A DNA stretch of 62,986 nt, filler included, from Ministeria vibrans ATCC 50519 (GCA_943704425.1; 7 parts of 7 records of this genome joined end to end with filler, not necessarily neighbours in it), one strand, 5' to 3'; positions 37,864-57,477 are shown, numbered from the whole stretch's first letter. A program made the numbers and translations. The notes: a model not told the origin generated them from the letters alone.

Positions 37864-40800
37864 GTGTTGGTGTAGAGACCCTCGGCACAAATGGTGCGAG
37901 CGCCACCAGTGCACGAGTAAAACATGGGGCAAATGTCACAGTCAGAACGGGCAGTCTCCTCGTTGTACTCACCATCGACGCACACCTTCATAGTCTCGCC
38001 ACTTACGCAGTACGAGCCAATGCTGCAGTCAACACAGCTAGCCTGGCCCTGTTGGGGCTGGTGCTTGCCGTTGGGGCACACAGTCTCGATGCCACCGTTG
38101 CACGAATGCTGAGTGTTGCAACTCTTGCACTCGCTCAACTGGGCGACGTCAGAGTAGCCGCCGGGAGCACACACCGTTTGGAATCCTCCGACACAGAAGT
38201 GTTTTGCGGTGCAGGTCAGGCAGGCGTTCTGATTGCCGGCCGGCTGATGGAAACCAGCGGGACACTGGGTCTTGATGCCACCAGTGCACTTGTGACCAGC
38301 CTCGCACGTCGCGCAGTCAGACTGCCCGGTCGAGTCGGTGTACTCTCCCTCGATACACTGACTGATGTCGCCGCTGGTACACTCGGATCCAATAGGACAC
38401 GTGATACACACAGATTGACCTGTCACCAGATTGTACTGTCCTGGCACGCAAGTGGTACACACGCTGAGGCCGGTGGTGGCGGCAATCTCGTGGGCACCAC
38501 ACGCGGTCATGATTCCAGCAACACACTTGCTGCCAGCGTCACAAGAAAGACAGTCCGCATTGCCAGCAACTGGCTGGTGTGTTCCCGCAGCGCATGTGCC
38601 ACACACGGTCTGACCGGTTGTGGGGGCATGCGTGGTAGCAGCGCAGTCGGTGCGGTGGCCGCCGACACAGTACGATCCTTTGGGACAGATGGTGCAGGTG
38701 CTGGCGCCCGCGAGTGAGTAGTGACCCGTGGCGCACGGCGTCTTGATGCCGGCGGCGCAGGCGTGGCCAGCTTCGCACGTGGTGCAGGCAGTGTTAGCGG
38801 TGTTGAGGGAGTACGAGCCGGCGGTGCAAGTGGGGCACGTCGAAGCGCTGGGGCTGGCCTGCGACGTTGCGGCAGGGCATGCAGTCTGAATGCCTCCGTT
38901 GCAGCTGTGGCCCGGAGCACAAGCGTCGCAGCTGTCCTTGCCAGTGCCGGGCTGGTGAGATCCGCCCGGACATACGGTGCGCACACCGGCGTTGCACGAG
39001 AAGGTAGCGGGGCAGGTCACGCACGAACTTTGACCAGTGGACTCCTGGTAGGAACCAGCAGCGCACTGTGTCTTGACGCCGCCCGAGCAGGAGTTGGTCG
39101 CTTCACAGGTGATACACACCGACTGAGAGGCGGTGGATGTGTACTTGCCTTCAGCACACACAGTCTCGACACCGCCGACGCAGAAGTAGTTGGCTCGGCA
39201 CGCAATGCACGCCGCCTGACGCTCGTTAGGCTGGTGTGTGCCAGCAGCGCAAGGGATTTGGTTGCCACCCGTACAGTAGTTCGTGGGTGCACATCCGTCG
39301 CATGTGCTCTTCTTTGTTGCGTCAGTGTACAAACCCGGACCACACTTGTTGCGGCCGCCCTGGACACAGTAGTAGGTGATGGGGCACGGGTCGCACGTGT
39401 CGCGTTGCACAAAGTCGTTGTACTCGCCAGCAGGGCAAGGAATGAGCTCACCATCGATACACTTGTTGCCGATAGGACACTCAAGTTGCTCGCCACCGGT
39501 ACAGTAGTGACCAAAAAGGCACGTCTTACAGACCGACTGAGCCGGTGCGTCCTGGTATGTTCCGTCGATGCATGGGACCAGCTTCCCGTTGGCACACTTG
39601 TTCTTGGTGGGGCACGCCGTGCACACGCTGAGTCCTGCGGTCGCGGAGTAGTAGCCTGGGTCGCAAACCTTCTGGATACCTGCGACGCAGTAATGACTCT
39701 CGGTACAGGTGAGACACACACTGGCGCCCTCGTTGGTGTAGTCACCGGCGTCACAAACGACAGGACCCGCGCCCACAAGACAGTAGCTGCCCTCGGGGCA
39801 CGGAGAGCACGTGGACTTGCCGGTGGCAGGCTGGTACTGGGCGTTGGGGCACGGCGACTTGTTTCCGGCGTTACACATGTGGTGCAGCGGGCACGTGGTA
39901 CAGACAGATTGTCCCTTGGTGTCGGTGTACGATCCGCTGGCGCAGATGCTGATCTGACCGGCGCTGCATGAGCTGCTGATTTCGCACGAGAGACAAGCTG
40001 TCTTGCCAGTCGCAGGCTGGTACTGACCTGCGGCACACACGACGGCCGTTCCCGACGATCCGGCACAGTAGTTGTACTGGGGGCAGGTGACGCACACGCT
40101 CGCACCGGTGCTGGCAGTATGGGTTCCAGCGGCGCACGACTGAATGGCTCCCGATGTGCAAAACTTGTGAACGGGGCACGGAGCGCACGTGGAGCTTCCG
40201 ACAGCGTTGTTGTACTCGCCAGCAGTGCAGAACACACAAGCGCTCATTCCGGGGGCAGACGTGTACTTGTGCGCAGCACATTGGGTAGCGACACCTCCGA
40301 CGCATTCACTTCCGGCCGGACAAGTGATACAGTTGGCCTGCGATGCGCTGGGCTGGTGAGAGCCAGCGGCGCACGCGACGCACACAGTCTTGCCAGTCTG
40401 GGGCTGTGACGTGGTTGCGGGACAGTCGGTGCGGTGGCCACCGACACAGTACGATCCCTTAGGGCAGATAGTGCAGGTGCTGGCACCTGCCAGTGAGTAG
40501 TAACCCGTGGCGCACGGCGTCTTGATGCCGGCGGCGCAGGCATGGCCAGCTTCGCATGTGGTGCAGGCAGTGTTGGCAGTGTTGACGGAGTAGGAGCCGG
40601 CGTCACAAGTGGGGCACGTCGAGGCGCTGGTACTCCCCTGCGATGTTGTGGCAGGGCATGCAGTCTGAATGCCTCCGTTGCAGCTGTGGCCCGAGGCACA
40701 AGGAAGACAGCTGTCCTTGCCTGCACCGGGCTGGTAAGTTCCGGCGGCGCAACGAGTGCGCACACCGGCGTTGCACGAGTAGGTGGCGGGGCAGGTCACG

Positions 40801-43800
40801 CACGAGCTCTGGCCGGTGGACTCCTGGTAGGAACCAGCAGCGCACTGCGTCTTGACGCCGCCCGAGCATGAATTGGTTGCTTCACAGGTGACGCACACCG
40901 ACTGAGAAGCAGTGGATGTGTACTTGCCTTCGGCACACACAGTCTCAACACCGCCGACGCAGAAGTAGTTGGCACGGCACGCAGTGCAAACAGAGCGGCC
41001 AGTGCTAGGCTGGTGTGTGCCAGCAGCGCAAGGTGTGAGCTTTCCAGCCTGGCAGTAGTTGAGAGCCTGGCACTGCTTGCAGATGCTTTGGCCGGCAGTT
41101 GCCGTGTAGGTTCCCGAAGCGCAGATGGTACGAACACCCTCAGCGCACGCGTAATTGACAGTACACGAAATGCATATCGACTGAGCAGCCTGCTCCTGGA
41201 ACAGACCAGCGCCGCAGGGGGTCTTGGCACCACCGGTACATGAGTGACCGGTGGGACATGGCTGCTGGACACCGCCAGTACAGTAGTGACCGGGATCGCA
41301 AGCGAGGCACGTTGCCTGGCCTGTGTTGGGCTGATGAAGGCCCTCTTCACAGGGTGACTTGGTGCCGGCAGTGCACGAGTGCTGGATAGGACAGAGGGTG
41401 CAAGCCGATTGACCGGTGGCGTCCTGGTAACGGCCATTGGGACAGACAGTCTTGATGCCACCAACACAGTAATTGGCGACGGGACAAGTGGTGCACGAAG
41501 TGGCGGACGCAGGCGAGAAGCTGCCGCCGGGACACACGACGGGCGCAGCACCTCCGGCGCAGGTTGAGCCGGCCGGACACGCAATGCAGGAGGTCTTGCC
41601 AGTGTCAGGCTGGTACTGGCCGCCTGGGCAGGGAGTACGCACGCCGCTGTTGCACTTGTGGTGGACAGGACAGGCTCCGCACACGGACTTGCCAGTGGTA
41701 TCAGTGTACTTGCCGGCGGCGCACGTGAGGCGGTTGCCGCCAACACAGTAGCTGTTGGTGGTACAGGTGGTACACGACGACTGGCCCGTTGCCAGCTGGT
41801 ACTGACCAGCGGCACACACGACAGCCTGGCCGCTGCTGCCGGCACAATAGTGGTAGATGGGACAGGAAGCGCAGACCGAGGCGCCCGTGCTGCTGGTATG
41901 CGTTCCAGCGGAGCAGCTCTTGATGCTGCCGCCTGTGCAATACTTGTTGATGGGACAAGCATCGCAGGTGGCGTCACCAGCGGTAGTAGTGGATGTGCCT
42001 GCAGCACAGGTGGTGCACGCACTGGCACCCGCCGAAGAGGACGTCGTGGCGGCGCAAGCGGTCTTGACACCGCCCACGCACGAGCTGCCAGCGGGGCACG
42101 AGATGCACGAGGACTGTGCTGTCTGTGTTTGGTACTGACCAGCAATGCAAGTCTTGCAGGCAGTCTGACCCACCGAGTTCTGGTACTGCGTGGCGGGGCA
42201 CGCGGTGCGTGCGCCATCGACACACTTGTAGCCGGCTTCGCACCTGACGCACGATGTGCCGGAAATGTAAAAGCCAGTGCTGCAGCCGGTCTTGACGCCA
42301 TCGACGCAGATCGAGCCAGAGGGGCATGCCAAGCAGCCAGTGTTGGCTGTGCCCTCTGAGTAAGTTCCCGAGGGGCATGTGGGGCATGTTGCCTGACCGG
42401 TTTGGCTTTGGTAGGTGGCAGCAGGACAAGCGGTTTGGGACGTGTGCGGTGAGGGGCACATGAAACCCTTGGAGCAAGTGGTGCACGCATAGGCGCCAGT
42501 GGACGCGGTGTAGGTACCATCAAGGCAGCCCGAGCGGAGACCGCTCACGCACTTGTAGCCCTGTTGGCAGAGAGTGCACGAACTGGCGCCAACACCAGAG
42601 TACGCCGAGACGCCGGGACCCGTCGGACACTGGATCTTCAGTCCCGAGGTGCTGGGACAGTAGAAGGTCGGAGGGCAAATGCTGCAGACGGACTTGGCGA
42701 CGGCATCGGTATGAACACCTGCGCCACACAGGCTCTGGACACCGGAAGTGCACATGTAGCCAATGGAGCAAGCGGAGCACGATGTCGTGCCAGTGTTGGG
42801 CTGGTGATAGCCAGCGGCGCATCCCTGGCGAATGCCACCGGTACAGTAGTACTTGGCCTCGCACGTGGTGCACACCGACTTGCCAGTCGAGCTGGTGTAC
42901 TTGCCGCCAGCGCATTGAGTCTTGAGACCGTTGATGCAGTACGATCCAATGGGGCACGCGGTACAGGCGCTGTTGAGAGCGTACGTGCCGGCGGCGCACG
43001 AGCCGAGGTTACCACCGACGCACACCTTGCCGGCGGGACACGGGTAAGCGACACCCTGAGTGCAGTAGTAGTTGGCGGGGCAAGTGTCGCACGACGACTG
43101 GCCCGTCTTCGGCTGGTGGAGACCCTCGGCGCAGATGGTGCGGATGCCCGAACTGCACGAGTGGGCCGTGGGACAGGTGTCGCAGGAGGTTTTGCCAGGG
43201 GAGGCCTGGTAAAAGCCAGCGGGGCAGATCTTGCGAGTGCCGTCGCCCGAGCACGAGTAGGCAATGGTGCAAGTGGCGCATACGGAGAGACCGGTGCTCT
43301 CGCCGTAGGTACCGGCGCCGCAGAGCTTGGGGTCCGCTCCGGCGGTGGGGCAGTAGTACTTGACGGGACAGACTGAGCAAGCGCTAGCCTTGGTTGAGGG
43401 AGTGTAATAGCGCACGGGGCAGATGGTTTGCTTGCCGCTGGTGCACATGTAGTTCTTGGGGCAATCAGCGCACGTCGATTGCTTGGTGGCGGCTGTGAAT
43501 CGACCCGCTCCACACACTTGGCTTTGACCGCCGCTGCAGTAGCTGCCAATGGCGCAGTTGTTGCAAGTCCACTGGCCGGTCGAGTGCTGGTAGGTGCCGG
43601 CGCTACAGACAGCGCGAGTGCCGGTCACACCTGTGCAGTAGTTGTAGATGGGGCACGTTTGACAGGAAGATTGTCCCCCTGCGTCGGTGTAAGTACCCTG
43701 GGCGCACAGGGTTTGAACACCGCCGGAGCAAGCGTAGCCAGTGCCGCAAGTTTTGCACGAGGTGCTGTATGCCACCGACGTGTACGTTCCGCTGGCGCAC

Positions 43801-45903
43801 GTGGTGCAGACGGTGCGACCGGCCAGGCTGTACTTGGACGCGGGGCAGGGGGTACGGCTGGCACCGTTGCAGTAGTAGCCGGCGGTACACGTGGTACACT
43901 TGGCCGAGCCTGTCGAAGGGGTGTAGCTGCCGCTGGTGCAACTGAGGCAGCCGCTCTGTCCCTCGCTACCCTGGTACTTGCCGAGAGGACAGACTGCCGT
44001 GTTGCCACTGGTGCAGTAGCTTCCAGCCGAGCATGTCTTGCAGACGGTCTGGCCGTACTGGTTGGTGTAGCGGCCGTTGGCGCAGAGGCTGCTCACGCCC
44101 GATGGACACTGGTAGCGAGGTTGGCATGGAGTGGTACACGAAGTAGCGCCGGCGCCGCTTGTGTAGTAACCCGTCGAGCAGAGAGTACACGCCTTCATGG
44201 CGTACTGTGATCCATAGCGACCGGTCGGACAACTGAGGCACCACGCCTGCCCTGTGGAGCTTTGGTACTGGCCGGTGGGGCAGTTGCGGCAGTAGTTGCG
44301 CGAGTAGGGGTTGTACTGACCGCCCGGACAGTTGGTGCAGAGGCCGCCGGCGGAGCTTGTCTTGCCCGAGGGACAGTTAGTGCAGGAGGTGGAGCCTGCA
44401 GGCGACGATGTGTACGAAGGACAGTTGAGGCAACTTGTGCTGGAAAGATACTGGCCAGCGGCGCAGCCGGCACACGAGGTGCGGGCACTGTTTGCGGTCT
44501 TTCCACTGGGACAAGCATCGCAGTATTTGCGGTCGGAACGCCCGATTGTGCCGGCAGGGCACAGAGGGCAGCTGGCGTAACCGGAGTAGGAGAACGTTCC
44601 AAGGGTTGGACAGGTGACGCAGTACTTGGAGCCCCAAAGGCCTGTGTACTGGCCGGCCGGGCAGTTGATGCACGAGGAACGGCCCTGCTGGTCCGCGTAC
44701 TTGCCCTGGGGGCAAGCAGTGCACGAGGTACTACCGGCGGACGGGTTGTACTTGCCATAGTCGCAGTAGGTGCACTGGTATGTGGCAGTTGTGGCCTTGT
44801 AGCGACCCGAGGGGCACGCCCAGCACGCGGTCGAGTAGTATGACGACTGCGAGACGGTTCCTCCTTGACACGCGCTGCACACCCACCAGCCGCTGCCGGA
44901 TGAGTAGTAACCTGGACCACAGGCAGCGCAGGAGCTTTGTGTGTAGTAGTTATTCGAACGACCAGCTGGGCAGCTAATACACGACGCCTGTTGCGTGCTA
45001 CCCTGGTACTGGCCTTGAGGGCATGCGATGCAGCCATAGCGCACCTGACTTTGGTAGTACGAGCTCGACGGCATGTAGTATCCACTGCCGCAGGTGCGAC
45101 AACCAGATGTGGGCGCGTCGTTGTAGTAGAAGTACCTACCACCGGGGCAGTAGGCGCATGAGCCTGCACCGGAGCTCAGCGTCGTCTGAGGCTTGGTGCA
45201 GGAGCGACATGCCTTGAGGCCACCGTAGGCGTACAGAGTGCGGTAGTAGTAGTAGGTGGTCGTTTCTCCCCACCACGAGTTGTAGCTGTAGCCGGTGGTG
45301 AGAACGGAAAAGGCATTGTTCACCCAAGCGTTGTTCGGCGTGTACTTGCCAATGGGGCACGTATGGGGACAGTTGGACGTGCGACCAAAGGTGTAGGGAG
45401 CGTTGCTGTAGTAGCGACCGGTCGAGCACGCGACGCAGGATGAATAACCCGCACCGGGGGTGTACGTGACGGGATTGCACGAGATACACGAAGTGGCAGA
45501 AGTACCGGCGTATCTTCCGGCAGCGCAGCCATAGCAGTACGTCTGGCATGTTGAAGCCTGGTAGTATCCTGGAAAATGTACAAAAGAAACAATACTTATT
45601 GTAAAAATCCAACAGGTATAATACCCGCTACGTTGTCGTACCATACGAACAGGCACGGCAGGAAGATTGACCGGACGACCCTTGGTATTGGCCGGCGGGG
45701 CAACAGCGGCACGCACCAGAGCCGCCCTGTCCGTAGTAGGGCTGGTAACGACCAGTGCCACAGCTGACACAGTAGCCCGGGTCGCCATTACGCCACTGCG
45801 GAAAGTATTATTAATTATATTATTACGATTGTTTTTTTTTTATCTTTTGTGTGTGTGTGTTTTTTTTTTTTTTACCATGCCGGGAGGGCAGACAATGAGA
45901 CGA

Positions 45904-45935
<32 letters not shown>

Positions 45936-46286
45936 ACGGCGGCGGCGGCGGCGACGACGGCGGCCCCAGCGCTTAACAATTTCCCCAGACTCGCTACTTT
46001 CGTCGGAGAGAGCGGCCTCCTCAAGAGACGCCTGCAGACCGGCCAAAATATCAAGCTCATTGGAAGTTTCGCTCTGGAGGTCGGCGCCACGCTTTTCAGG
46101 GCGAGCGTCCGACCACTCAAGGGCCGAGTCGGCGGCGGAGGGCTGTTCCGCCCGAGCCTCCGCAGTGATTTCGTTCAAGGGCGACACCGCCTCCTCCTTG
46201 GGAACGTGAGCCGCCACTACTGCAGAGAGTAGACTCAGTAGAGTAGCCAACACGACGAGTAGGAGTCGGTCGCGCGTAGTTGCCAT
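37864..46286 (-). CDS. Giant (>2700 aa) secreted Cys-rich repeat protein (GCC2/GCC3, ephrin-receptor-like CxxCPAGxYQ repeats); 3' end lost in gap
   Basis: Exons 46286-45876, 45795-45642 and 45568-37864 join in frame through GT-AG introns. Signal peptide, acidic segment, KR, W-G-R21, then dozens of CxxCPxGxY(Q/C) units. Confidence 0.85.
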
Positions 46287-47778
46287 CTGTCAGAAGCACA
46301 GCGAGTTTTAGTTTTTTTTTCTTTATTGCGACACGCACAGTTTTCTTTGCACAAGGACACAAAATCAATACACGCATAGTTCCCGCCCAACTGAGTGAAC
46401 TGACCCAAGCATTGGTGTCGTTTCAACAAAGCGCACAGAGACTCCAATACTTTAAATTTTTTTATGAGAATCATTAAGGTTTGTTGATACGTTAGCACAA
46501 ACCCACAGGCACCCAAAAAAAAAAAAGTGTCACCGCAAACATTTGTGTTTGGCGCTTGTACAGCCGCACGGCTTTACTTTCAGCGCGGAAGTCACTCATA
46601 ATGGACTTGTATGGTCACTAATTATTCTTCGGGGCAAAGATAGCGCAAGAAGCAGGTGTCGGTGGTGGCTGGGATGGGTTGGCAAAAAGATGCTCTGCGA
46701 ATGCTCTGCAGAAAAGGGCTCTGCCGTGTCTACTTGGCTGCTGCACCCGCCCCACGACACATACACACTGATTTCATGCATGGTACTCATGCATATGCTT
46801 GGATTTGCAAAGAAAAAGAGGGGTTGGGTCTTTTTCTTCTCATGGACTATCTTTGGTATGTTCCGCGAATGTCTCGCACGCACAAGGGAGGAGGAACGCA
46901 GACGCCCGTCATGCTGCATGTGCTCGGCACAGCCCGCATTTCGATATAATATGTAACCTTACCATTGAAATGATCTTTAGTGGGAACACGAAAAAAAAGA
47001 TGAATTAATTTTTGAGAATTTAGAGAAAAAATTAATCATAAGCGTACAGATTAATAATAATATTTTTTATGATAATAATGATTAGATTGGAAGAATTTGA
47101 AGCCATACTTTCAGCATTCAGCAACAAAAATCTCTTAAAAAGAACCTCTATAAATGCTCAATGCTTGACCAGAACGCTTTGCGGAGATGAATGGTCAATA
47201 AAATAATTTCTTCCGAGCGATTTCGTTGAAAAAGTGGGAGACGCCGTGAGCGTCTATTAAAAATGATTGTTATGAACAAAACAATAAATTATTATTATAA
47301 TTGCAGTAATAAAGATTGGCAAAGAATTGCTCCATGACATATTATTGGCAAGGAAAGAAGAAGATGAGTACTAGTGTGCATTGTCACTTGAACTCTACTT
47401 TGCCGTTGGTTCGCCGAACGTTCGCCCTCCGACGCGACTGCTTCACCCTCCCCCAAGTTTCAAGTAGACGTTGCGCGATCGGCCGTCGACTTGCGTGCAT
47501 GAGAGCCGGTTACCAGATCAAGACGTGAACCTTTCCGCCCGCGGGTCCTCCGGCACCGAAGTTCCTTCGCTGGCAAAGGAAAAATTTGAAGAAGTGATAT
47601 TGCTTTGTTTTGTATATAGTCTTGTTTTGACATTTAGTACGCTACTACAGCTCTCGATTATCCTAGGTATTTTTCTTATTTTGAATAATTATTATGTATT
47701 TTCCTGACGTTGGCTTTCGTTGTGTATTGCGACTGTACATGTGCAGAAGGGCCTTTCCGTCTCGCTTCTCCTTTCGCG

Positions 47779-50061
47779 CTACATTGCGGAGAAAAGTAGC
47801 CCTCCGTCATCATAATCGCCACCGCTGCTATCCACCTCCATGCTCCCTTGTATGTTGCCACCGTTCGCCGCGTGTGATGCCTCTGCGCCGGACTGTGTGT
47901 TTGTGCTGAGCATGGAGGGTGTCAGGGCAGTTGAGGGACGCCACAGGCGCACTATCGTGTCATCGCCAGCAGACGCTATCGTCTCCCACGCGTCGGTCGA
48001 GCTCCATGATACCATATTCACTGTGCTCTCGTGCCCACGAAGCGCCGACAAGAGTCGTCCGCTATCCCGGTGCCACACATATACCACTCCATCTAACGCG
48101 ATCAGAAAACTCAACGTCCTTACGCCGTATGCATTTTGCTCGACGCTACGTACCTTCGGAGCCACTGGAAACGTACTGCTCACGAGCACCGCCAAAACTT
48201 GCACGGATAATGTAGCGACCGAGCAGAAGACCCTCAAAGGAACGGACACGCGTGTGTGTCGTGAGGTCCCACAGGGTGATTTTCGACGAGACAAGATTGA
48301 GCAGGACAAAGCGCGAGTCGGCGGAAAGACACAACGACGTAATGGCGTTTGTCTCGCACAGCACAATGACAAAGTCGTCTTGGGGAGCATCGTCCGTGTC
48401 CATCCGCGAGCCAGTGCGACGCACATCACCCTCCTGGAGTGCATCAAACAGGCGCACATTGTGATCGTGATTGATTGTCACCAAGCGCGCTTCGTCATGC
48501 GTCACCACCACTTCCGTTACGGGTGACACCCACCGATGCACCAGCTCAAACGCACACGTCTCCTCACCATCCCGATCTTGCCCTTCCACTGCATCTGCCA
48601 CCGTCTCATCAATCCGCCACTGCTGCATCCGATGGCTTGCACTCGCCTCCAAAATCTCCCGCCCATTCGCCAGCCAGCAGCATGATGTCACTGCATGTGA
48701 CAGCCGAATGTTCGCCAACTCAATCCCAGTCTAAATTTATTATCATAATAATAATAATAATAATTATTATTATTATTATTGTTATTATTGTTATTATTAT
48801 TAATATTGTTATTCTTTTTGTTATTATTATTATTATTGCTATTATTATTATTATTGTTATTCTTTTTGTTATCATTATTATTATGAATCGTACTTGAACA
48901 TTCCACAGACGAATGTGATTGTCATTTCCACAGGTGAGCAGTCGAACGTCATCGGGACTCCACGCCAGGTATGACACTGCGCCCGTATGTCCTTCAATTC
49001 GACGCACTAACCTCCCACTCTATATACAAGACCAATATGAATAATAATAAAAAATATATTATTATTATCAAAATCATTTACACTTACATTTGCGTCCCAT
49101 ATAATTGCACTGTGGTCCTTCGAGGCACTCGCCAAAAACTGATTGTTGTGGCTGAACTTGACATACCACACTTCGTCGGAATGTCCCGTGAGTGACTTCC
49201 ACTCCTTTGTCGGGACAAGATCACTAAACAAACAACAACAAGGGCGTATTATGATGAAAATAATAAAAATAATAATAATAAAATTAATTATTATTATTTT
49301 TATAATAATTATTTTGTATCAAGTGGCATTGAAGTCTGTAAGTCAAACCTTTCACAGGAATGATCAGCGAGTAACGAACACCATTCGGGCGACGATGGGT
49401 CACCACACGTACACTCGGCCCGCTGGTGCACCATCGCCTGTGTCAGCAGTCCGTCCAATCGTCCCTCAGTCACTCGCAAGCCCATAGGAAGAACCTCTGC
49501 AAAGGGTAAAGAATACAATTGCACGACTGTAAAGCTATGTGTGGCTCCAGCATCCTTGGCTACCTTGCAGACGTCGCATGAGATTCAAGCGAGAACGTTC
49601 TCCTCCTCCCGACCAGTTGGCTCGCCCCCGCAAATCCTCCACCGACGAACACATCAACAAACTACAACAATACACGTTTTAACCCACACACGTTGAAGGG
49701 TTATTTTTTTTTTTGAATTCAAACTGCTCACGCGCTAAGCTGTTGAACAGACTTGGAGGCGTTTTGGTCGATAGGCGACAGGTCGTTTTGGAGACAGGCG
49801 AGTGCTTCGACGGTACGTCGTTGTTCGAGAAGTTCAAGAAACTTTTGTTCGTATACCAATGTCTTGGCTCTCTACGAATGTAACAGTTCACAGTATGATA
49901 TATTAAAGAGCCTACTGGTATCATCACATACCACCAGTGTCTCTTCTGGTACATTGGGCAGCTCCATCATTCGGGATATAGTCTGCATCACAAGACATGT
50001 CAGTGAAAGGGTAATAAAACAAATGGAACACAAAATGGCATATCACAAAGACAGACACACT

Positions 50062-50142
<81 letters not shown>

Positions 50143-50251
50143 CATACACTGTTCCAGTCGCCGCTTAGAATGCTCGTGCGCATGGTAACTGTTTCGGCAT
50201 TCTCTAATGGAATGCCTGACTCAGTCTCGAGCTCTGAGGCGGATCGTCTAC

Positions 50252-50290
<39 letters not shown>

Positions 50291-50564
50291 AACACCTCAA
50301 CCAATTCAGATTTCGCCATCGACGTCGCTGGTGCCTCGCCATTCACTCCGACACCATCAGGAGATGAGGCAAACGAGGGCAGAGCAGACAAGAGACATAC
50401 CTGTAGCCGAGTTCGCGCAACGATTGGACGAGCAGTCGGACAAGTTCACTGCGCTTCCAGCCGCCTGGAGTCGCTGCGTCGCGAGCCGGAGCGTGGTGCC
50501 CGTTGGTGAGAGGCATAGGAGTGCTGTTCGCTTGCAGGGTGGGGTGAGCGCGGTCGTGATCCAT
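47779..50564 (-). CDS. WDR26: WD40 protein WDR26/GID7 (CTLH complex subunit); start uncertain and may lie further upstream
   Basis: LisH RSELVRLLVQSLRELGY, CTLH ILSGDWN...YEQKFLELLE, VTEGRLDGLLTQA, WD40 repeats GHSDEVWYVKFSHNNQFLASASKD, RYIIRASFGG...SSGSEDG, GHESTVNMVSW. Confidence 0.85.
48740..48885. repeat. (ATT/AAT)n intronic microsatellite (similar tracts at 10400-10500, 10950-11000, 12180-12320)
   Basis: Visible trinucleotide tracts. Confidence 0.9.
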
Positions 50565-50914
50565 CGCAGAGAGAGCAATACGTTTCGTGGCACGCTCTTC
50601 GATGGAAGGACTCGATGAACGGCGACGTCGAGCACGATCACGGTCACCACTACTTGGTTCGTCTATGGGGTCTCTCGAAGCCGTCGTGAACGCTCGAAAG
50701 AAGAAATTTGTCTGAACTCTGCAGACTCTGCTGAAATAGTGAAATATGTGTGACTGAATAACTAAATCAGTCACCTGTCGTTTGTTTTATACACAGTTTC
50801 AGTTTCTCTCTGTCATCTTTTTTCTTCATATTGATGCCTTGACGTCGTCAGTGATCAGTATCATCAGTTACACTCCCATCCACACCACCACAGGCACCAC
50901 TGCCCTTCGCGCCA

Positions 50915-53900
50915 ATGGTGTCATTCGGCTTCCTTTCACTTCAGACATTGCTCCTCGCTCTGTCTGTGCCCTTCGCCCTGTCTTCTCCCGGCGGGTGCAC
51001 CGGCTCATGGGAGTCCGAGTACCCGATAGGCACCGGCACGCCCGACGGGAAGTTCAGCGCAACGCGCGCTGGCTCGAAACTCATCGTGGTAACCGAGGTA
51101 ACAAAATTTCTTTTTCTGCCCATTAGTTTCAGTTTGAATGGCTATTGAGCGTATTGCGAGCAATACCCGCTCCCCGACCCGGCGACCCCGCTACAAGTAC
51201 TGTGATCGAGCCCATCGTACCGATTACCGCGCCAACCCTTCACGTTATTTTCCGCTTTTTTTTCCGATGGTGTGACGTCAACGCCAAAGTTAACGACAAA
51301 ACTATCATTTAACTCATCTTGTCACATTGGCGAGCTGCGTTATGTTGCGGGGGATGCTTTCATGTTCATTCTTCGTGTATTCCGCGTACAGAGTTATATC
51401 CCGACTGCCGTTTATTTTCTTTTCTTTTTGTCTGTGACGTATGAAATCGGTTATTTACTCTGTGTGTCTCTCTCTGTTTCCAATAGTCGGCGAGCGCAAA
51501 CTCGCTGAATCTTCTGGATTGCCCCGGCGCGTACGGCTCCGGTCAGTGTGTCAAGCATGACCTGGACGCGCTGGCAAGTGCGACCGGCAGAACTCTCACC
51601 CGACCTGACGTCATCTTCCACGCTGCATCCAACACCATTCAGGTGTTTGCGATGGACGGCAGCAACAGCGACAAGCTGGCCGTGATCACGTGCAATGCGA
51701 CCTCCATCACCTGCGACCCTCTCCACGTCATGCCTTACCCCATCGCGAGCCTTACAGGACGTGCTCCCATTGGCTTTTTCGATGCGGCAGGAAACTCCAT
51801 GGTGATTACCGACAACCGCAATGCGGGAGGGAAGCGCAACCATTTGCTGCGCGTCAACCCCAACGGCACTGTCGAGCACGATGTTCTCATCAACACACTC
51901 ACAGACTTCTCAAAGCGCTCCAACGTTGCCGCCAACCCTCTTGGCGACTTTTACATTTCGGGAAATAATGGCGACGCCAACTTGTGGGTGGTGCATTGTC
52001 CCATGGGCATGACCGCCTCTGGTGATTGCGCTGCCGTCGTGGTCACGGCCAACGCCGACATGGGTGACTCAAGCCGCGTGGGCTACGACGAATCCAACGA
52101 CAAGCTGCTGGTGGCCGGCCTCAACGGCGCCATGCTCCAAGTCTACCTCTGCTCGCCCACCGTCACGGGTTGTGCCATGACAGATGTGAGTTTCGGCGTC
52201 GCTCAGACGCGTCCGCGCATGTTTGTCGACAATGCGAACGGGAACGTAGTGCTCGTGAGCAGACGTGTCAGCGACAATCACCTGCTCGTCACCAAGTGCA
52301 CTGTGGCGCTAACAGGCTGTACACAGACCGACATTAGCACCCCACTCACTGTCAACGACCCATGGCCCGTGTATGACGATATAGCGCAATCGCTCATTGT
52401 GCTTGCGCGTGAGATCGGCACGAACTATCTACTGCGCTTCTCTTGTGATGACGTCGATGAGTGCGCATCGAACCCGTGCGAGAACGGCGGCACCTGCACC
52501 GACCTCGTAGATGGCTACACGTGTGCGTGTGTGCCAGGCTACAACGGACTGACATGTGGGGTGAACATTGATGAGTGTGCATCGAACCCGTGCGAGAACG
52601 GCGGCACATGCACCGACCTCGTAGATGGCTACACGTGTGCGTGTGTGCCAGGCTACAACGGACTGACATGTGGAGTAAACGTTGACGAGTGCGCGTCTAG
52701 CCCGTGCGAGAACGGCGGTACATGCACCGACGCTGTCAATGGTCACCTGTGCACATGCCCCCCGGGCTTCGCCGGCATCACGTGCAATATCAACGTCGAC
52801 GTGGCCCTTAGCCATCTTCCCACCGCGACAATCGCAAATGGAACCTCTGCGAGTGCAGTGGTCTCGCAGCTCACCGCACTTCTTGCTAACGACACATGGC
52901 TTGCGGCAAGCAGCACTGCAGATGCCGTCGAGTCTGTCACTTCCTCGCTGAGTCTCCTTGCCAACTTTTCGCTCGCCACGTCCTTTTCGCTCGCCACCGC
53001 ACAGGCAAGCGGAAACACCACGCTTGTCGCCGAGCTGCAGACCGTCACCGCGCTCGGCATTGCCAATGCCACCATCGTGCTGGCTAACACTCTACTCGCC
53101 AGTAGTGCCTCACATCAGGAGCTCGTCGGCGCTAGCGTACCCGGTGGGCCGAGTGTGGCCACATCGGTCGAGGCAGCCGCACGTGCCCTTGCCCTCGGAC
53201 AGACGTGCGATGAAGTTCATAGCGACTCAGTTGGCGTCCTGCAATTGCTCACTGCTCGTGTGTCTACGTCTGCGAATCTCTCTGGAGTATATTCCAGCAC
53301 CGCCACCGATGCCACCATCACCGTACCCACCGACTTCTCTAGTGAGCTCGCGAGCGACCCGTCTGTAACCGAGACTCACTGTTCGATTACTATCGAGATG
53401 GTCGTCTTCGCGCCCTCAGGAAGCCCGTTCCCCGATCGCAAGACGGCCGCTGAGCAACTAGCATCAACCTACAACACGAGCGATGCGACTCTAATCCTTG
53501 ACTCGGCGGTTATGTCGTTCGTGGCGGGTGTCGCTTCCGTTGCCAACCTGAGCGAGTCTGCCTCGGTGATCATCGAGCTCGCGAAAAGTGGGACAGTTTT
53601 GTCGACAATGGAGCGCCGCTGCTTCTACTGGTCGTACGTCCATGGTGGCTGGGCGAGCGATGGCTGCGAAAAAATTGCCGAGACGCCCACAACGGTGACA
53701 TGCCGCTGTAACCATCTCACCAGCTTTGCCGTCCTCTTTGACGCGGGAAACACAGCGCCTCCACCTCCACCACCAACGGTAGACGAGTGCGAGTCGAATC
53801 CGTGCCTCAATGGAGCCTCCTGCCTCGATGGTGTGGACTCGTTTGTCTGCGTGTGCGCCTCGGGATTCTCTGGCGTCCTCTGTTCAATCAACGTTAACGA

Positions 53901-56757
53901 GTGTACAAGCGCGCCGTGTCAGAATGGTGGCGCGTGCACCGACGGCGTCGACAGCTTCATGTGTACCTGTGCCAATGGATGGACCGGCACAACGTGCACT
54001 GGTCAAGTCAACGAGTGCTCGAGCACCCCCTGCCACAATGGCGCAACGTGTGTCGACTCGGTGGATGGCTTCACATGTACTTGTACGGCCGGGTATTCGG
54101 GCGCTCTCTGTTCGATAAACGACAACGAGTGCGCCAGCACGCCATGCAACAATGGCGGCGTCTGCGTGGACTCTGTTGACGGCTTCACGTGCACATGTGC
54201 CAGTGGCTGGACGGGCACGACGTGCACTCTGGGCATTGACGAGTGTGTCTCGTCCCCGTGTGGCAACGGTGGCACTTGTGAAGACGCTGTGGACGGATTT
54301 ACATGCGTTTGCGCTGCTGGTTTCTCAGGGTCTCACTGCTTCAACTCGACCATTTGCGACTCGTCGCCGTGCGACAATGGAGGTTCGTGCGTGACAACTG
54401 GGCCTGCTGCATTCACGTGCTCATGCGCTGTCGGGTGGACCGGCGCACAATGTCAGACGGTCATCAACCACTGTGATTCAACACCGTGCCATAACGCTGG
54501 TCTCTGTACAAATTCCGCCTCCGGATTTTCCTGTACATGCACGGCCGGCTTTTCAGGCACCGACTGCTCCTTGGACGTCGACGAGTGTGTGAGCATGCCA
54601 TGCCAAAACGGCGCTGTATGCGAGGACAACGTCAACGGGTTTGTGTGCACTTGTGCTAGTGGCTGGACGGGTGTACAATGCGATGTGAACATCAACGAGT
54701 GCGCGTCAGCGCCATGTGCCAACGGAGGCACCTGTGTCGAGACAGTCGATGCCTACACATGTAGTTGCGAGAGCGCATGGACTGGTCCCCGCTGTATTAC
54801 TTCGCTAAACGAGTGTGTGTCGTCGCCGTGCGCCAACGGCGGTGCGTGCATTGATGGCATTGGTAGCTTCACGTGTTCCTGCGTCGGCCTCTGGACTGGC
54901 AGTGCTTGCGAGATCGAGCTGGAAATTTTCGAGCTGATCTCCATGGCTCTCAACGACACTGTCGGTGGAGTGTTGACGACGACCAATGTCACGCTTGTCG
55001 TGCCTCCTGGTGCTTTGCCGCCGGGCGTGACAACGATCGTCATCGGACGTCCTGCGTCGCAAGGGCCACTCGACACAGAGCCGCACACACACCGCGGCTC
55101 GATTGTCTATGCGCTTCAGCCAGCGATCACGTTCAACGTCCCAGTGCGCATCACTGTGCCCACGGGAGCGTCATCGTCCGGCTATCACCTTGTGCTCTAC
55201 TACCGAGCCGCTGGACAGCCGTGGGAGCGTGCGGGCAACCAACACGCGGACAAGAATATGCGTACCATCAGCGGCGACCTATCGCACTTCAGTGACGTGG
55301 TTGTCTACTACGAGGCGGACAACAACCTACTGTCACGCATCACCGACTATGTTACGTGGATTAGCAGTGCCATGTCCATTGTTGGCTGTATCCTCGTCAT
55401 CGTGGTCTACGCTGTGTTGCGCGATATGCGCACGACACCAATTGTCTTCCTTATGCAGCTCTGTGTGGCACTGATCATGGTCAACGTTGTCTTTCTCGTG
55501 GGTATTGACCGCACGAACAACCCATCGGTGTGCTCGTCCATGAAGCTGCTGCTCTACTACTTTATCTTAGTTCTGTTTTCCTGGATGTTTGCATGTGCGC
55601 TGCATCTGTGGCGTGCCATCGCGTTTAACGTCCGCTCAACCTCACTGGCCACCGTGCTCATCAGGTCGTGTCTTGTGTGGGCGTTGCCTGCCATTCCCAC
55701 AGTCATTGTGGCTGTCATTGATACCCTTGATGGCAACACCACGTCGCAGGTCGTTTGCTGGTTTGCTCGAGGGCCCGCACTCACATGGGCCTTCCTCGTA
55801 CCACTCAGCGTCCTGTTGGTGGCGTCTGTTTTCGTCCAGATTGCTTGCTTTCGATTTTTCTATCTCTCATACCGGAGAGCTCGCTCACTGGGCAAGGCAG
55901 GTGTCGACGAACGCGTGCGCTACCTGCGTGCCTCAGTCGTCTTTACTTTGACCACTGGAAGCACGTGGCTGTTCGCGTACATCGCGCTCGCTCTCGATGT
56001 CGACGTCATGTGGCTTGTCTTTGCCCTGCTCAACGGCTTTCAAGGGGTTTGGTTGTTCATCGCCTACTGCATGCCCAGCCGAGTGCGTCATGCGTTTGCT
56101 GCGTGGTACCGCAAGCGCTTTGGGGATCGAAGCACTCGTACCACGGGCCGCACACAGCCAACAGGCAGCGCTGGGACCAAATCGACGAGTGAAAATCTCG
56201 CTGAAGGGACTGCAAGTCCCTCTTCCTCCCACGTGCGAGCGATACCGCTCTCTCGCTCGCGCAACACAACAGAGACATCGAGCTCGAGTGACAACAGCAT
56301 GCGTCTTCGCGATATACTCAACGGTCGCCTCGAGTCGTTCTACGAGCGCGACGAGGAGGTTATTGCAGAGATGCGCAGTCACTATCGCATCGATAGAAAA
56401 CCAAGCAATTCTACCGCAACTATGTCCATGTGGGTCAACAGCGACGCCGCTGCCAGTGACGATGTTCAAGCGTTGCTTGTGGACAGCGTGTCGTCTTCCC
56501 CGCAACTTACACCTTTATGCTCACCCACGAGCCCACGGTATTTGGTAGCGCATTCATCGTCACACAACTACAGCTTGGACTCCCTCCAGCTCAACTCATC
56601 AAGCACGTTTGCCTCCAGTGGGGAGCTCAACGTCAATGCGAGTCGCGACTATATGTGTCTCCGTCCAACCGACGGTGCTACCATTGAACGGATCAGCGGA
56701 GGGAAGGCGACTGGCGTTTCCGTCGACTCCGAGACGTTTTTTCAAGCTCAATTTTGA
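50915..56757 (+). CDS. Adhesion-GPCR-like receptor (~1817 aa): SP - Cys-pair repeat region - 3 EGF - GAIN/GPS - 10 EGF - ZU5(HFS) - family B-like 7TM - Ser-rich tail
   Basis: Exon 50915-51097 (signal peptide) splices in phase 0 to 51487-56757. GPS CFYW...WASDGC...TCRCNHLTSFAVL at ~53619-53740. ZU5 GGVL...LVVPPGAL...FNVPVRITVP...LSHFS. 7TM motifs YYFILVLFSWM, CLVWALP, VCW, LNGFQGVWLF. Confidence 0.9.
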
Positions 56758-56945
56758 ACACGACTGTACAATAATACATAAATTTATTGATTATCGCTAT
56801 TTTAATCTAGTAGAGTCGTTCGACGTATGGATGATGAACATCGGATAGTTGAAAATTGAGTGAAAATTGGCGAAAATGACGGGATCTTATATAGAAGGGG
56901 AAAAAACTAACATTAAAACAAATTAATAATAATTGTCACTATTGT

Positions 56946-57110
56946 TCAATCAGTGCTCTCAGCTCGCCAAATGAAAACACTCGTGTCGAGCCCACCAGTA
57001 GACACAAGATAGCGACCATCGGCCGTCCAAACGACACGCGATACTTCATCAGAGTGACCCACATAGGTTCCGATAAGAGCAGTCGCGTCACTTGCCGGGA
57101 AGCGATACAG
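56946..57110 (-). CDS. Terminal exon of EML/EMAP-like WD40 protein (rest lost in gap)
   Basis: LYRFPA...YVGHSDEVSRVVWTADGRYLVSTGGLDTSVFIW matches the EML C-terminal WD repeat. Confidence 0.7.
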   Translation of the reverse strand: MYRFPASDATALIGTYVGHSDEVSRVVWTADGRYLVSTGGLDTSVFIWRAESTD

Positions 57111-57432
57111 CTGTATAAACGAACAAAAACAGTACACAAAAGATTCAGCAAGCTCGTCGCATTCGCAATATCACTTTGTTTCTGTCTCCCTCATTTCTCT
57201 TTCTCTCTCTATCACTTAGTTTTTTTATTCCCCCCTCTCTCTCTATCACTTTGTTTTTTTCTCCCCTCTCTCGTTTCTTTCCCCCTCCTTTCTTTCTCTC
57301 TATCACTATGTTTCTCTCTCTCTCTATCACTATGTTTCTCTTTCTCTCTATCACTATGTTTCTCTCTCTCTCTATCACTATGTTTCTCTCTCTCTATCAC
57401 TATGTTTCTCTCTCTCTATCACTATGTTTCTT

Positions 57433-57477
<45 letters not shown>

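Follow-up and report, generated by a model that had tools for sequence, protein, structure and literature searches.

To our knowledge, the junction between the GAIN domain and the seven-transmembrane (7TM) domain is treated as a defining and invariant feature of the adhesion class of G-protein-coupled receptors (aGPCRs). How GAIN arose and became coupled to the 7TM domain is an open question. Multi-fragment members of the class have precedents, given that ADGRF1 (GPR110) and ADGRF5 (GPR116) have a SEA domain as well as GAIN, and ADGRG6 has a furin site as well as GAIN. Liao et al. 2014 reportedly regarded the beta subdomain of GAIN (GAIN-B) and ZU5 as homologous, and are said to have named a prokaryotic class "ZU5-like" and to have proposed an HFS-type ancestor of GAIN shared with ZU5 and Nup98. 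Here we describe an aGPCR gene of Ministeria vibrans ATCC 50519 (GCA_943704425.1) in which the 7TM domain is directly preceded by a cysteine-free HFS sandwich of prokaryote type, about 125 residues long, and not by GAIN. The gene lies in a window of 62,986 nucleotides, filler included, made of seven parts of seven records of this genome joined end to end and not necessarily neighbours in it. The piece of DNA analysed runs from 37864 to 57477 (55.6% GC, without N), and positions are counted from the first letter of the window.

The bacterial "MAIN" domain is a GAIN-B-like sandwich without subdomain A. It is cleaved between F and S of an HFS motif, as determined by Edman sequencing, and an S-to-A exchange kills cleavage; after the cut the fragments remain associated. 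MAIN always stands between adhesion or enzyme domains and a cell-surface anchor, and the anchored fragment is not known to play any part in signalling (Brogan & Rudner, bioRxiv 10.64898/2026.05.12.724683). PIDD cleaves at HF/S following each ZU5 domain that it has (PMC3210808), and the main text of a choanoflagellate GPCR catalogue presents GAIN-7TM as a conserved holozoan module (PMC12716839). Against this background the Ministeria receptor is a real and rare variant of the aGPCRs, one in which the juxtamembrane GAIN is missing. Taken as a whole, the explanation that we favour, with moderate confidence, is that of an intact adhesion-class GPCR gene with two self-cleaving-type modules of one fold superfamily arranged in series.

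A ZU5-like domain adjoins the membrane

The receptor is encoded on the forward strand by an open frame at 51643-56757, 1704 codons long and interrupted by neither a stop nor an N; residue n begins at nucleotide 51643+3(n-1). All searches and folding runs used this exon 2 frame, with a candidate exon 1 (see below) left unjoined. A sequence-only reading of the window had placed the receptor in a single uninterrupted exon, and its coordinates and motif positions were all borne out. The order of domains is an N-terminal region, three EGF repeats, GAIN/GPS, a poly-Pro linker, ten EGF repeats, the ZU5-like domain, the 7TM domain and a tail. Over the whole protein, Pfam reports 13 EGF repeats (E 5e-92), 12 EGF_CA stretches, EGF_TEN, 7tm_2 (E 2.2e-24) and ZU5 at 16.9 bits, below its cutoff. 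The motif H[FL][ST] occurs just twice, at the HLT site of the GAIN domain and at the HFS site next to the membrane.

The domain adjoining the 7TM region spans residues ~1097-1225 (54931-55317) and is a ZU5-like (GAIN-B/MAIN-like) beta-sandwich of the autoproteolytic type. When residues 1090-1235 were scanned alone, ZU5 (PF00791) reached 22.0 bits against a cutoff of 21; no other Pfam family was found in them, and GPS was undetected even at E <= 10. Residues 1091-1248 contain no cysteine, and the domain has a single tryptophan (W1194). Between EGF13 and the first strand lie only about 15 residues, which leaves no room for a helical subdomain A. The juxtamembrane module thus has neither a GPS motif, nor the four cysteines and two tryptophans, nor the subdomain A of a GAIN domain.

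AlphaFold2 folded residues 1090-1240, from an alignment of six sequences, into an all-beta model (pLDDT 77.5, pTM 0.73). The HFS region is modelled with a pLDDT of ~90, and the strand that follows the motif (strand 119-136) lies within the sandwich. In a Foldseek search of the PDB, the ZU5 domains of ankyrin and UNC5b ranked at the top (E 2e-6 to 1e-5, TM score about 0.6), followed by GAIN domains (E 1e-4 to 1e-2; CD97 1.8e-4, BAI3 1e-3, also BAI2 and CELSR1) and then by NLRP1. Comparison with VIA gave the same ranking at the top, with ankyrin ZU5 at Z 13.3, 13.2 and 12.9 (rmsd 2.2-3.4 A over 118-135 residues, the 2.2 A over 118), CD97 GAIN at 10.1, BAI3 GAIN at 9.3, CARD8 at 8.6, UNC5b at 8.4, NLRP1 at 7.7 and Nup98 at 4.5. 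The predicted model therefore has the ZU5 beta-sandwich fold. ZU5-like domains and GAIN-B share a fold superfamily, so one member of it stands here where another normally does.

The predicted autoproteolysis motif, H1215-F1216|S1217, lies at 55285-55293 in the context LSHFSDVVVYY. In the VIA alignments, seven chains that are N-terminal fragments of cleaved proteins all come to an end at model residue 127, the equivalent of F1216. Five of them are GAIN chains (GPR56 5kvm_A, ending at its residue 382, ADGRL3 8vti_A, GPR110 8hc0_A, GPR97 7qu8_A and Gpr126 6v55_A) and two come from NLRP1 (rat 7crv_C and human 6x6c_E, the latter ending at F1212); the NLRP1 nucleophile is S1213 (PMC3210808). Because these chains end on F1216, HFS occupies the scissile position of the fold. 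The motif sits at the kink before the last strand, as it does in the subset formed by PIDD, UNC5CL and Nup98. From motif and fold, cleavage of HF|S at S1217 is likely. The first transmembrane helix (TM1) begins at about residue 1237 (nucleotide ~55351), so that S1217 lies 20 residues before it, the distance given by the sequence-only reading.

The closest relatives of the domain are bacterial

An exhaustive phmmer search with the ZU5 piece against 1.84 billion representatives returned eight proteins at E <= 1e-3, and no 7TM domain was present in any of the eight. Two of them (P0006 and P0007) were set aside as repeat or low-complexity noise on the basis of Pfam. The other six (P0008-P0013) are secreted proteins of prokaryote type, with lipoprotein-like signal peptides, a type IX secretion system (T9SS) sorting tail and CarboxypepD_reg repeats. 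They match at E 4e-6 to 7e-4 and 30-38% identity, and the alignment spans the domain from its first strand to its end. In five of these proteins (P0008-P0012) (S/T/K)HFS is retained and leads into a hydrophobic strand. In alignment A1, HFS is present in four of five prokaryote-type relatives, or five of six rows when the query is included.

Bacterial genomes queried with a single protein gave no match to the ZU5-like domain; a query built from a three-sequence alignment found the same domain, ending in THFS, in a lipoprotein of Labilithrix (Myxococcota). On these alignments, HFS is a feature of the family and not a chance occurrence. The sequence relationships place the Ministeria domain in the class that Liao et al. 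2014 are said to have called "ZU5-like", and the class of its relatives may be the MAIN of Brogan & Rudner 2026. Sequence and predicted fold together support a ZU5-like domain that is distinct from the classical cytoplasmic ZU5. Of the earlier proposal of a ZU5-like domain in the GAIN position, the fold thus stands (Z 13 to ankyrin ZU5), with the refinement that the domain is no classical cytoplasmic ZU5 and is closest in sequence to extracellular HFS domains of prokaryote type.

One relative is of interest in its own right. P0008, a protein of 921 residues and of Bacteroidota T9SS type, has the HFS domain in several copies in tandem, all of which end ...AEVSHFSDVVMTS. HFS is found in every repeat, and the repeats close with SHFSDVVMTS where the receptor has SHFSDVVVYY. 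Cleavage of each copy, should it occur, would turn the protein into a string of modules joined non-covalently.

The 7TM domain and the segment before it

An adhesion-class 7TM domain occupies 55345-56076, as identified by Pfam 7tm_2 (PF00002, E 2.2e-24), phmmer and AlphaFold2. The segment from S1217 to residue 1500 matched 22 entries of the PDB by phmmer, every one an aGPCR, the best being ADGRL3 (E 7e-25). The ADGRL3 alignment starts in the pre-TM1 linker (ITDYVTW), and the linker and the 7TM domain are both homologous to ADGRL3. Landmarks of the adhesion class are present, namely GIDRT, the C-W of extracellular loop 2, the G-x-T-W of TM6 and the N-x-x-Q-G of TM7. Neither a record of the exact protein nor a close homologue came up; in a search of 5.8 billion clusters the best 7TM identities were 26-28%, to invertebrate aGPCRs. 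The 7TM domain is followed by a Ser/Thr-rich cytoplasmic tail that matches no Pfam family and ends at the stop codon (56077-56757).

We aligned the receptor with five metazoan aGPCRs using MAFFT. The alignment lays the ZU5-like domain on GAIN-B, the histidine of HFS on that of HLT and W1194 on a GAIN tryptophan. The distance from this histidine to the [LMI]SI of TM1 is identical in two of the five metazoan receptors and 4-6 residues longer in the other three. Profile comparison by hhalign of the ZU5-like domain with metazoan aGPCRs found the same register at E 0.89, which is not significant; kinship with GAIN-B is therefore at the level of the fold and not detectable in sequence.

Cleavage at S1217 would leave the strand SDVVVYY (55291-55311) at the new N-terminus. 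AlphaFold2 models this segment as a strand, and we infer for it the role of a candidate tethered agonist, with SDVVVYYEADNN as the corresponding candidate peptide from the post-HFS sequence. SDVVVYY is hydrophobic at positions +3, +6 and +7, like TxFAVLM. The post-HFS fragment was modelled as the proposed check on docking. With an alignment of seven sequences, residues S1217-1500 gave a folded 7TM domain (pLDDT 80.7, pTM 0.80) whose top Foldseek matches are aGPCR structures; the first eight residues had pLDDT <50, and the peptide was not docked.

A complete GAIN domain lies far from the membrane

The second module of this superfamily is a complete GAIN domain (52795-53739), with a helical subdomain A and a beta subdomain B. 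When residues 390-710 were scanned separately, Pfam found GPS (PF01825) at E 1.7e-14. A phmmer search of the PDB with the same residues aligned ~190 of them to the GAIN domain of ADGRL3 (E 2e-6), and all matches at E <= 0.001 were aGPCRs. The GPS motif has all four cysteines and both tryptophans in addition to HLT. Given these residues and the 190-residue alignment, the distal module is a complete GAIN domain and more than a motif. The cleavage motif is H691-L692|T693 (53713-53721), and the last beta-strand of the domain is the Stachel-type TSFAVLF (53719-53739).

The GAIN domain is followed by a linker that begins DAGNTA and contains PPPPPP (53740-53778) and by EGF repeats 4-13 (residues 713-1090, 53779-54912), recognized by Pfam as EGF, EGF_CA and EGF_TEN. 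Here the sequence-only reading, which had listed an intact GPS with H-L|T and TSFAVLF, a poly-Pro stretch and ten EGF repeats, agrees with both Pfam and the sequence. Most of these ten repeats carry the calcium-binding signature D/N-x-D/N-E-C, and the stalk is for this reason probably a rigid rod. T693 lies 544 residues from TM1, where ~540 had been estimated, and 524 residues from S1217. GAIN with GPS is thus present in the ectodomain, and the place directly before TM1 (about 20-30 residues), where GAIN/GPS is found in aGPCRs, is taken by the ZU5-like domain.

Toward the N-terminus, the first part of the ectodomain (51487-52443) has no recognizable fold; it contains cysteine-bearing repeats and a weak beta-propeller-like signal. 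For these ~320 residues Pfam yields DUF5122 beta-propeller alone, at 17 bits and below the cutoff. A search of the ESM Atlas returned unnamed bacterial and viral clusters with a low recognition score and no informative family. The region may be a novel adhesion domain. EGF repeats 1-3 (52444-52794; Pfam EGF/hEGF) connect it to the GAIN domain. Repeats 1 and 2 are a near-identical tandem duplication (52456-52731, period 114 nt, 2.4 copies, 93% matches), which indicates that the EGF array expanded recently.

No second receptor with this layout was found

We looked for other receptors in which a ZU5 domain precedes a 7TM domain. Word-indexed searches of the 5.8 billion clusters, with length windows applied, were made with ZU5 plus 7TM, with ZU5 alone among long proteins and with residues 1090-1704 among shorter proteins; they returned only canonical metazoan aGPCRs, matched through the 7TM domain. 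Look-alikes in the ESM Atlas were all GPS plus 7tm_2 clusters, with no ZU5-7TM protein among them. A metagenome scan with a single-protein query found nothing, and one with an alignment-based query gave 15 loci; all seven of those examined carry C-x-C-x-HLT and FA(V/A/S)L before TM1. Two of the metagenomic loci (JGI Ga0105055_10115852 and Ga0105053_10139619, our L006 and L010) are near-identical contigs of 55-56% GC that encode a canonical aGPCR with C-T-C-N-HLT-SFAVL. In both, an intron separates TM1 from the Stachel linker; they are 7TM relatives from a microbial eukaryote.

Literature searches on ZU5 together with aGPCR, 7tm_2 or GPCR domain architecture turned up no description of such a receptor, and where papers name both ZU5 and aGPCRs, the link is just a citation of Liao et al. 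or the biology of UNC5. ZU5 is absent from the main text of the choanoflagellate GPCR catalogue (PMC12716839) and from that of a 2026 review of aGPCRs (PMC13197933). The earlier statement that no receptor of this layout has been described accordingly holds across the sequence, metagenome and literature searches, within the length windows of the word searches and with InterPro architectures outside their scope.

Gene structure and neighbouring sequence

The gene is eukaryotic, as judged from its EGF, GAIN and 7tm_2 domains and an intron. Upstream of the long frame we identified a candidate exon 1 (50915-51097, forward strand), which from its sequence has an ATG and a signal-peptide-like start (MVSFGFLSLQTLLLALSVPFALS...). 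It ends at a phase-0 donor, GAG|GTAACA, at 51098, and there is a second phase-0 donor at 51089. The candidate intron of ~390 nt (51098-51486) has a pyrimidine-rich 3' end, ...TCTCTCTCTGTTTCCAATAG, and exon 2 probably starts at 51487, at the boundary ...CCAATAG|TCG. The AG of the in-frame stop TAG at 51484-51486 would serve as the acceptor, which puts the opening of the exon 2 frame at 51487. The receptor gene thus probably has a short first exon that encodes a signal peptide, and with this exon and intron its true 5' end would lie upstream of the frame at 51643. GC content at third codon positions is 0.61-0.76 along the full frame, and given this uniformity the ~520 codons between GPS and TM1 resemble coding DNA as much as the remainder does.

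On the reverse strand, divergently oriented from the receptor, a single uninterrupted frame of more than 2640 codons (37866-45788) runs off the edge of the piece. Pfam recognizes in it 14 or more repeats of Ephrin_rec_like (PF07699; E 1e-93) and nothing else, and by its sequence it is a giant cysteine-rich protein of surface type. The stretch between the two large genes has 42-50% GC and holds a fragment of an open reading frame with a WD40 repeat (47779-48459, reverse strand), which matches propellers of the THOC3/Prp19/WDR3 type weakly and is probably a single exon from a gene that has several. Microsatellites flank the receptor gene, (TTA)49 at 48737-48884, (AC)44 at 50051-50139 and A35 at 50254-50288, and a CT-rich array of 22-24-nt repeats lies at 57202-57465, at the 3' edge of the piece.

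Proposed mechanism and alternative explanations

The arrangement suggests a working model. Through an N-to-O acyl shift, at T693 in one and at S1217 in the other, both modules would cleave themselves as they fold, and the three resulting fragments would stay joined non-covalently, each through the beta-strand after its cut. Pulling on the ectodomain could then extract SDVVVYY from the ZU5-like sandwich, and the new N-terminus beginning at S1217 could act on the 7TM domain as a tethered agonist, in the way known for TxFAVLM from aGPCRs of the ordinary kind. From the distal GAIN, TSFAVLF could not plausibly reach the 7TM domain of the same receptor, because 544 residues and a probably rigid EGF rod intervene. 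This GAIN would instead let the outer fragment, with its propeller-like, EGF and GAIN parts, come away at a second point independent of the first, either a shedding site or a mechanical fuse. The module that breaks would be set by the height at which a ligand grips the stalk and by the relative strength of the two interfaces. Mechanically the modules form a series, in which one load breaks just the weaker of the two, and two fuses alone do not give two thresholds; for the receptor to have two true inputs, ligands would have to grip its stalk at more than one height. As to origin, an EGF-ZU5 cassette may have been inserted into the linker between Stachel and TM1 of a canonical receptor, or a GAIN-bearing module may have been fused onto a ZU5-7TM receptor.

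The tethered-agonist reading in full is a tentative one, and we hold with slightly less conviction still the complete picture of a three-fragment aGPCR in which a prokaryote-type HFS domain masks and releases the agonist and a displaced, intact GAIN is a separate distal release point. Several observations weigh against it. Many ZU5 domains, among them those of ankyrin, UNC5 and ZO-1, do not cleave, and the Pfam score for ZU5 is at the threshold when the domain is scanned alone and lower within the whole protein. SDVVVYY has no Phe at +3, the residue typical of aGPCR agonists, and AlphaFold2, with its seven-sequence alignment, placed the first eight residues of the post-HFS fragment at pLDDT <50 in a straight helix that extends TM1, undocked. 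The possible kinship with MAIN, whose founding member is Bacillus subtilis YfkN, is drawn from the shared motif, the fold and the bacterial relatives. Cluster, representative and metagenome searches returned no orthologue or paralogue that shares the layout. Finally, the layout is known from genomic sequence alone.

This last point opens the way to an artefact, either an assembly chimera or a transcript from which the EGF-ZU5 part is spliced out, bringing GPS directly up to TM1. As repetitive DNA, EGF repeats are easily misassembled, and the gene has at least one upstream intron. However, the 1704 codons contain no stop or N, third-position GC is uniform, the ten EGF repeats and the ZU5 fold are all intact, and the ZU5-TM1 junction is continuous, with a pre-TM1 linker homologous to that of ADGRL3; moreover, an intron would not keep 520 codons of folded domains. 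We consider an artefact very improbable. Accepting the layout, one could take the ZU5-like domain for a non-cleaving structural or ligand-binding spacer with an inert HFS, in a receptor whose regulation is allosteric or comes from the distal GAIN only. In animals, ZU5 domains are indeed mostly non-cleaving binding modules, several aGPCRs signal without GPS cleavage, and the undocked peptide fits such a role. Yet an exact H-F-S triad stands at the scissile position of the fold, nearly all of the closest relatives keep it, and their class cleaves experimentally, while regulation by the distal Stachel would have to bridge the 544 residues and the stiff ten-EGF stalk that separate it from the 7TM pocket. 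Such a spacer appears rather unlikely to us.

A further alternative keeps cleavage and changes the identity of the domain, which would be a highly diverged GAIN-B that has lost subdomain A and the GPS cysteines and whose HLT has drifted, or gone back, to HFS, giving the receptor two GAIN domains. Position and spacing to TM1 are those of GAIN, GAIN domains are strong structural matches (Z 9-10), the best local hhalign alignment puts W...HFS on W...C-x-C-x-HLT, and GAIN-B and ZU5 are homologous according to the view attributed to Liao et al. 2014. But that alignment is not significant, none of the four GPS cysteines is present and the tryptophan is single, and Pfam finds ZU5 and no GPS at E <= 10. 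ZU5 also outranks GAIN in both structure searches, and all sequence relatives are HFS-type bacterial domains, with no GAIN among them. This makes a diverged GAIN-B unlikely, more so than a spacer, and we retain the reading of a prokaryote-type ZU5-like domain in series with a distal GAIN.

If this reading is true, the tethered-agonist mechanism would be portable across the GAIN/ZU5/Nup98 superfamily, and the receptor would represent either an intermediate that has survived or a repetition of the first coupling of an HFS domain to a 7TM domain. It would also provide the first signalling partner for a MAIN-like domain. The receptor makes it testable whether a member of the superfamily other than GAIN can mask and deliver a tethered agonist, to what extent the 7TM pocket and the masking sandwich each constrain the agonist sequence, and what GAIN does once uncoupled from the 7TM domain. 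For engineered force-gated receptors, the ZU5-like domain would be a compact, disulfide-free and naturally validated swap-in module.

Comparison with known systems

Like the canonical aGPCRs ADGRL3 (latrophilin-3) and ADGRE5 (CD97), the Ministeria receptor has an adhesion-class 7TM domain, an EGF-rich ectodomain, a true GAIN/GPS with HL|T and TSFAVLF, and an HxS/T motif at the canonical distance before TM1. In the canonical receptors, GAIN is adjacent to the membrane and supplies TxFAVLM, whereas here that place is held by a ZU5-like HFS domain without GPS cysteines or subdomain A, followed by SDVVVYY. The aGPCRs with a SEA domain or furin site share with it more than one processing site in the ectodomain. 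In those receptors, however, the agonist comes from a juxtamembrane GAIN, with the additional site in a distal position; in the Ministeria receptor the roles would be reversed.

PIDD1, UNC5CL, the FIIND of NLRP1 and CARD8, and Nup98 have in common with the juxtamembrane domain the ZU5 fold and autoproteolysis where the domain ends, at HF|S (SF|S in FIIND), which is predicted for the receptor. PIDD1 has in addition two sites in series that yield three fragments with different outputs, an arrangement to which the sequence of the receptor also points. Unlike the receptor, these proteins are cytoplasmic or nuclear and have no membrane receptor domain, and the released fragment acts through death-fold assembly and not as the tethered agonist of a GPCR. 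The prokaryotic ZU5-like/MAIN domains are the closest sequence relatives that we found. They are extracellular sandwiches without a helical subdomain (GAIN-A), they end in (S/T)HFS and a hydrophobic strand, and they are placed after adhesion domains and directly before the surface anchor, as the Ministeria domain is. MAIN domains are bacterial or archaeal and are anchored in the cell wall or envelope, whereas the domain described here belongs to a eukaryotic gene and has a signalling 7TM domain as its anchor.

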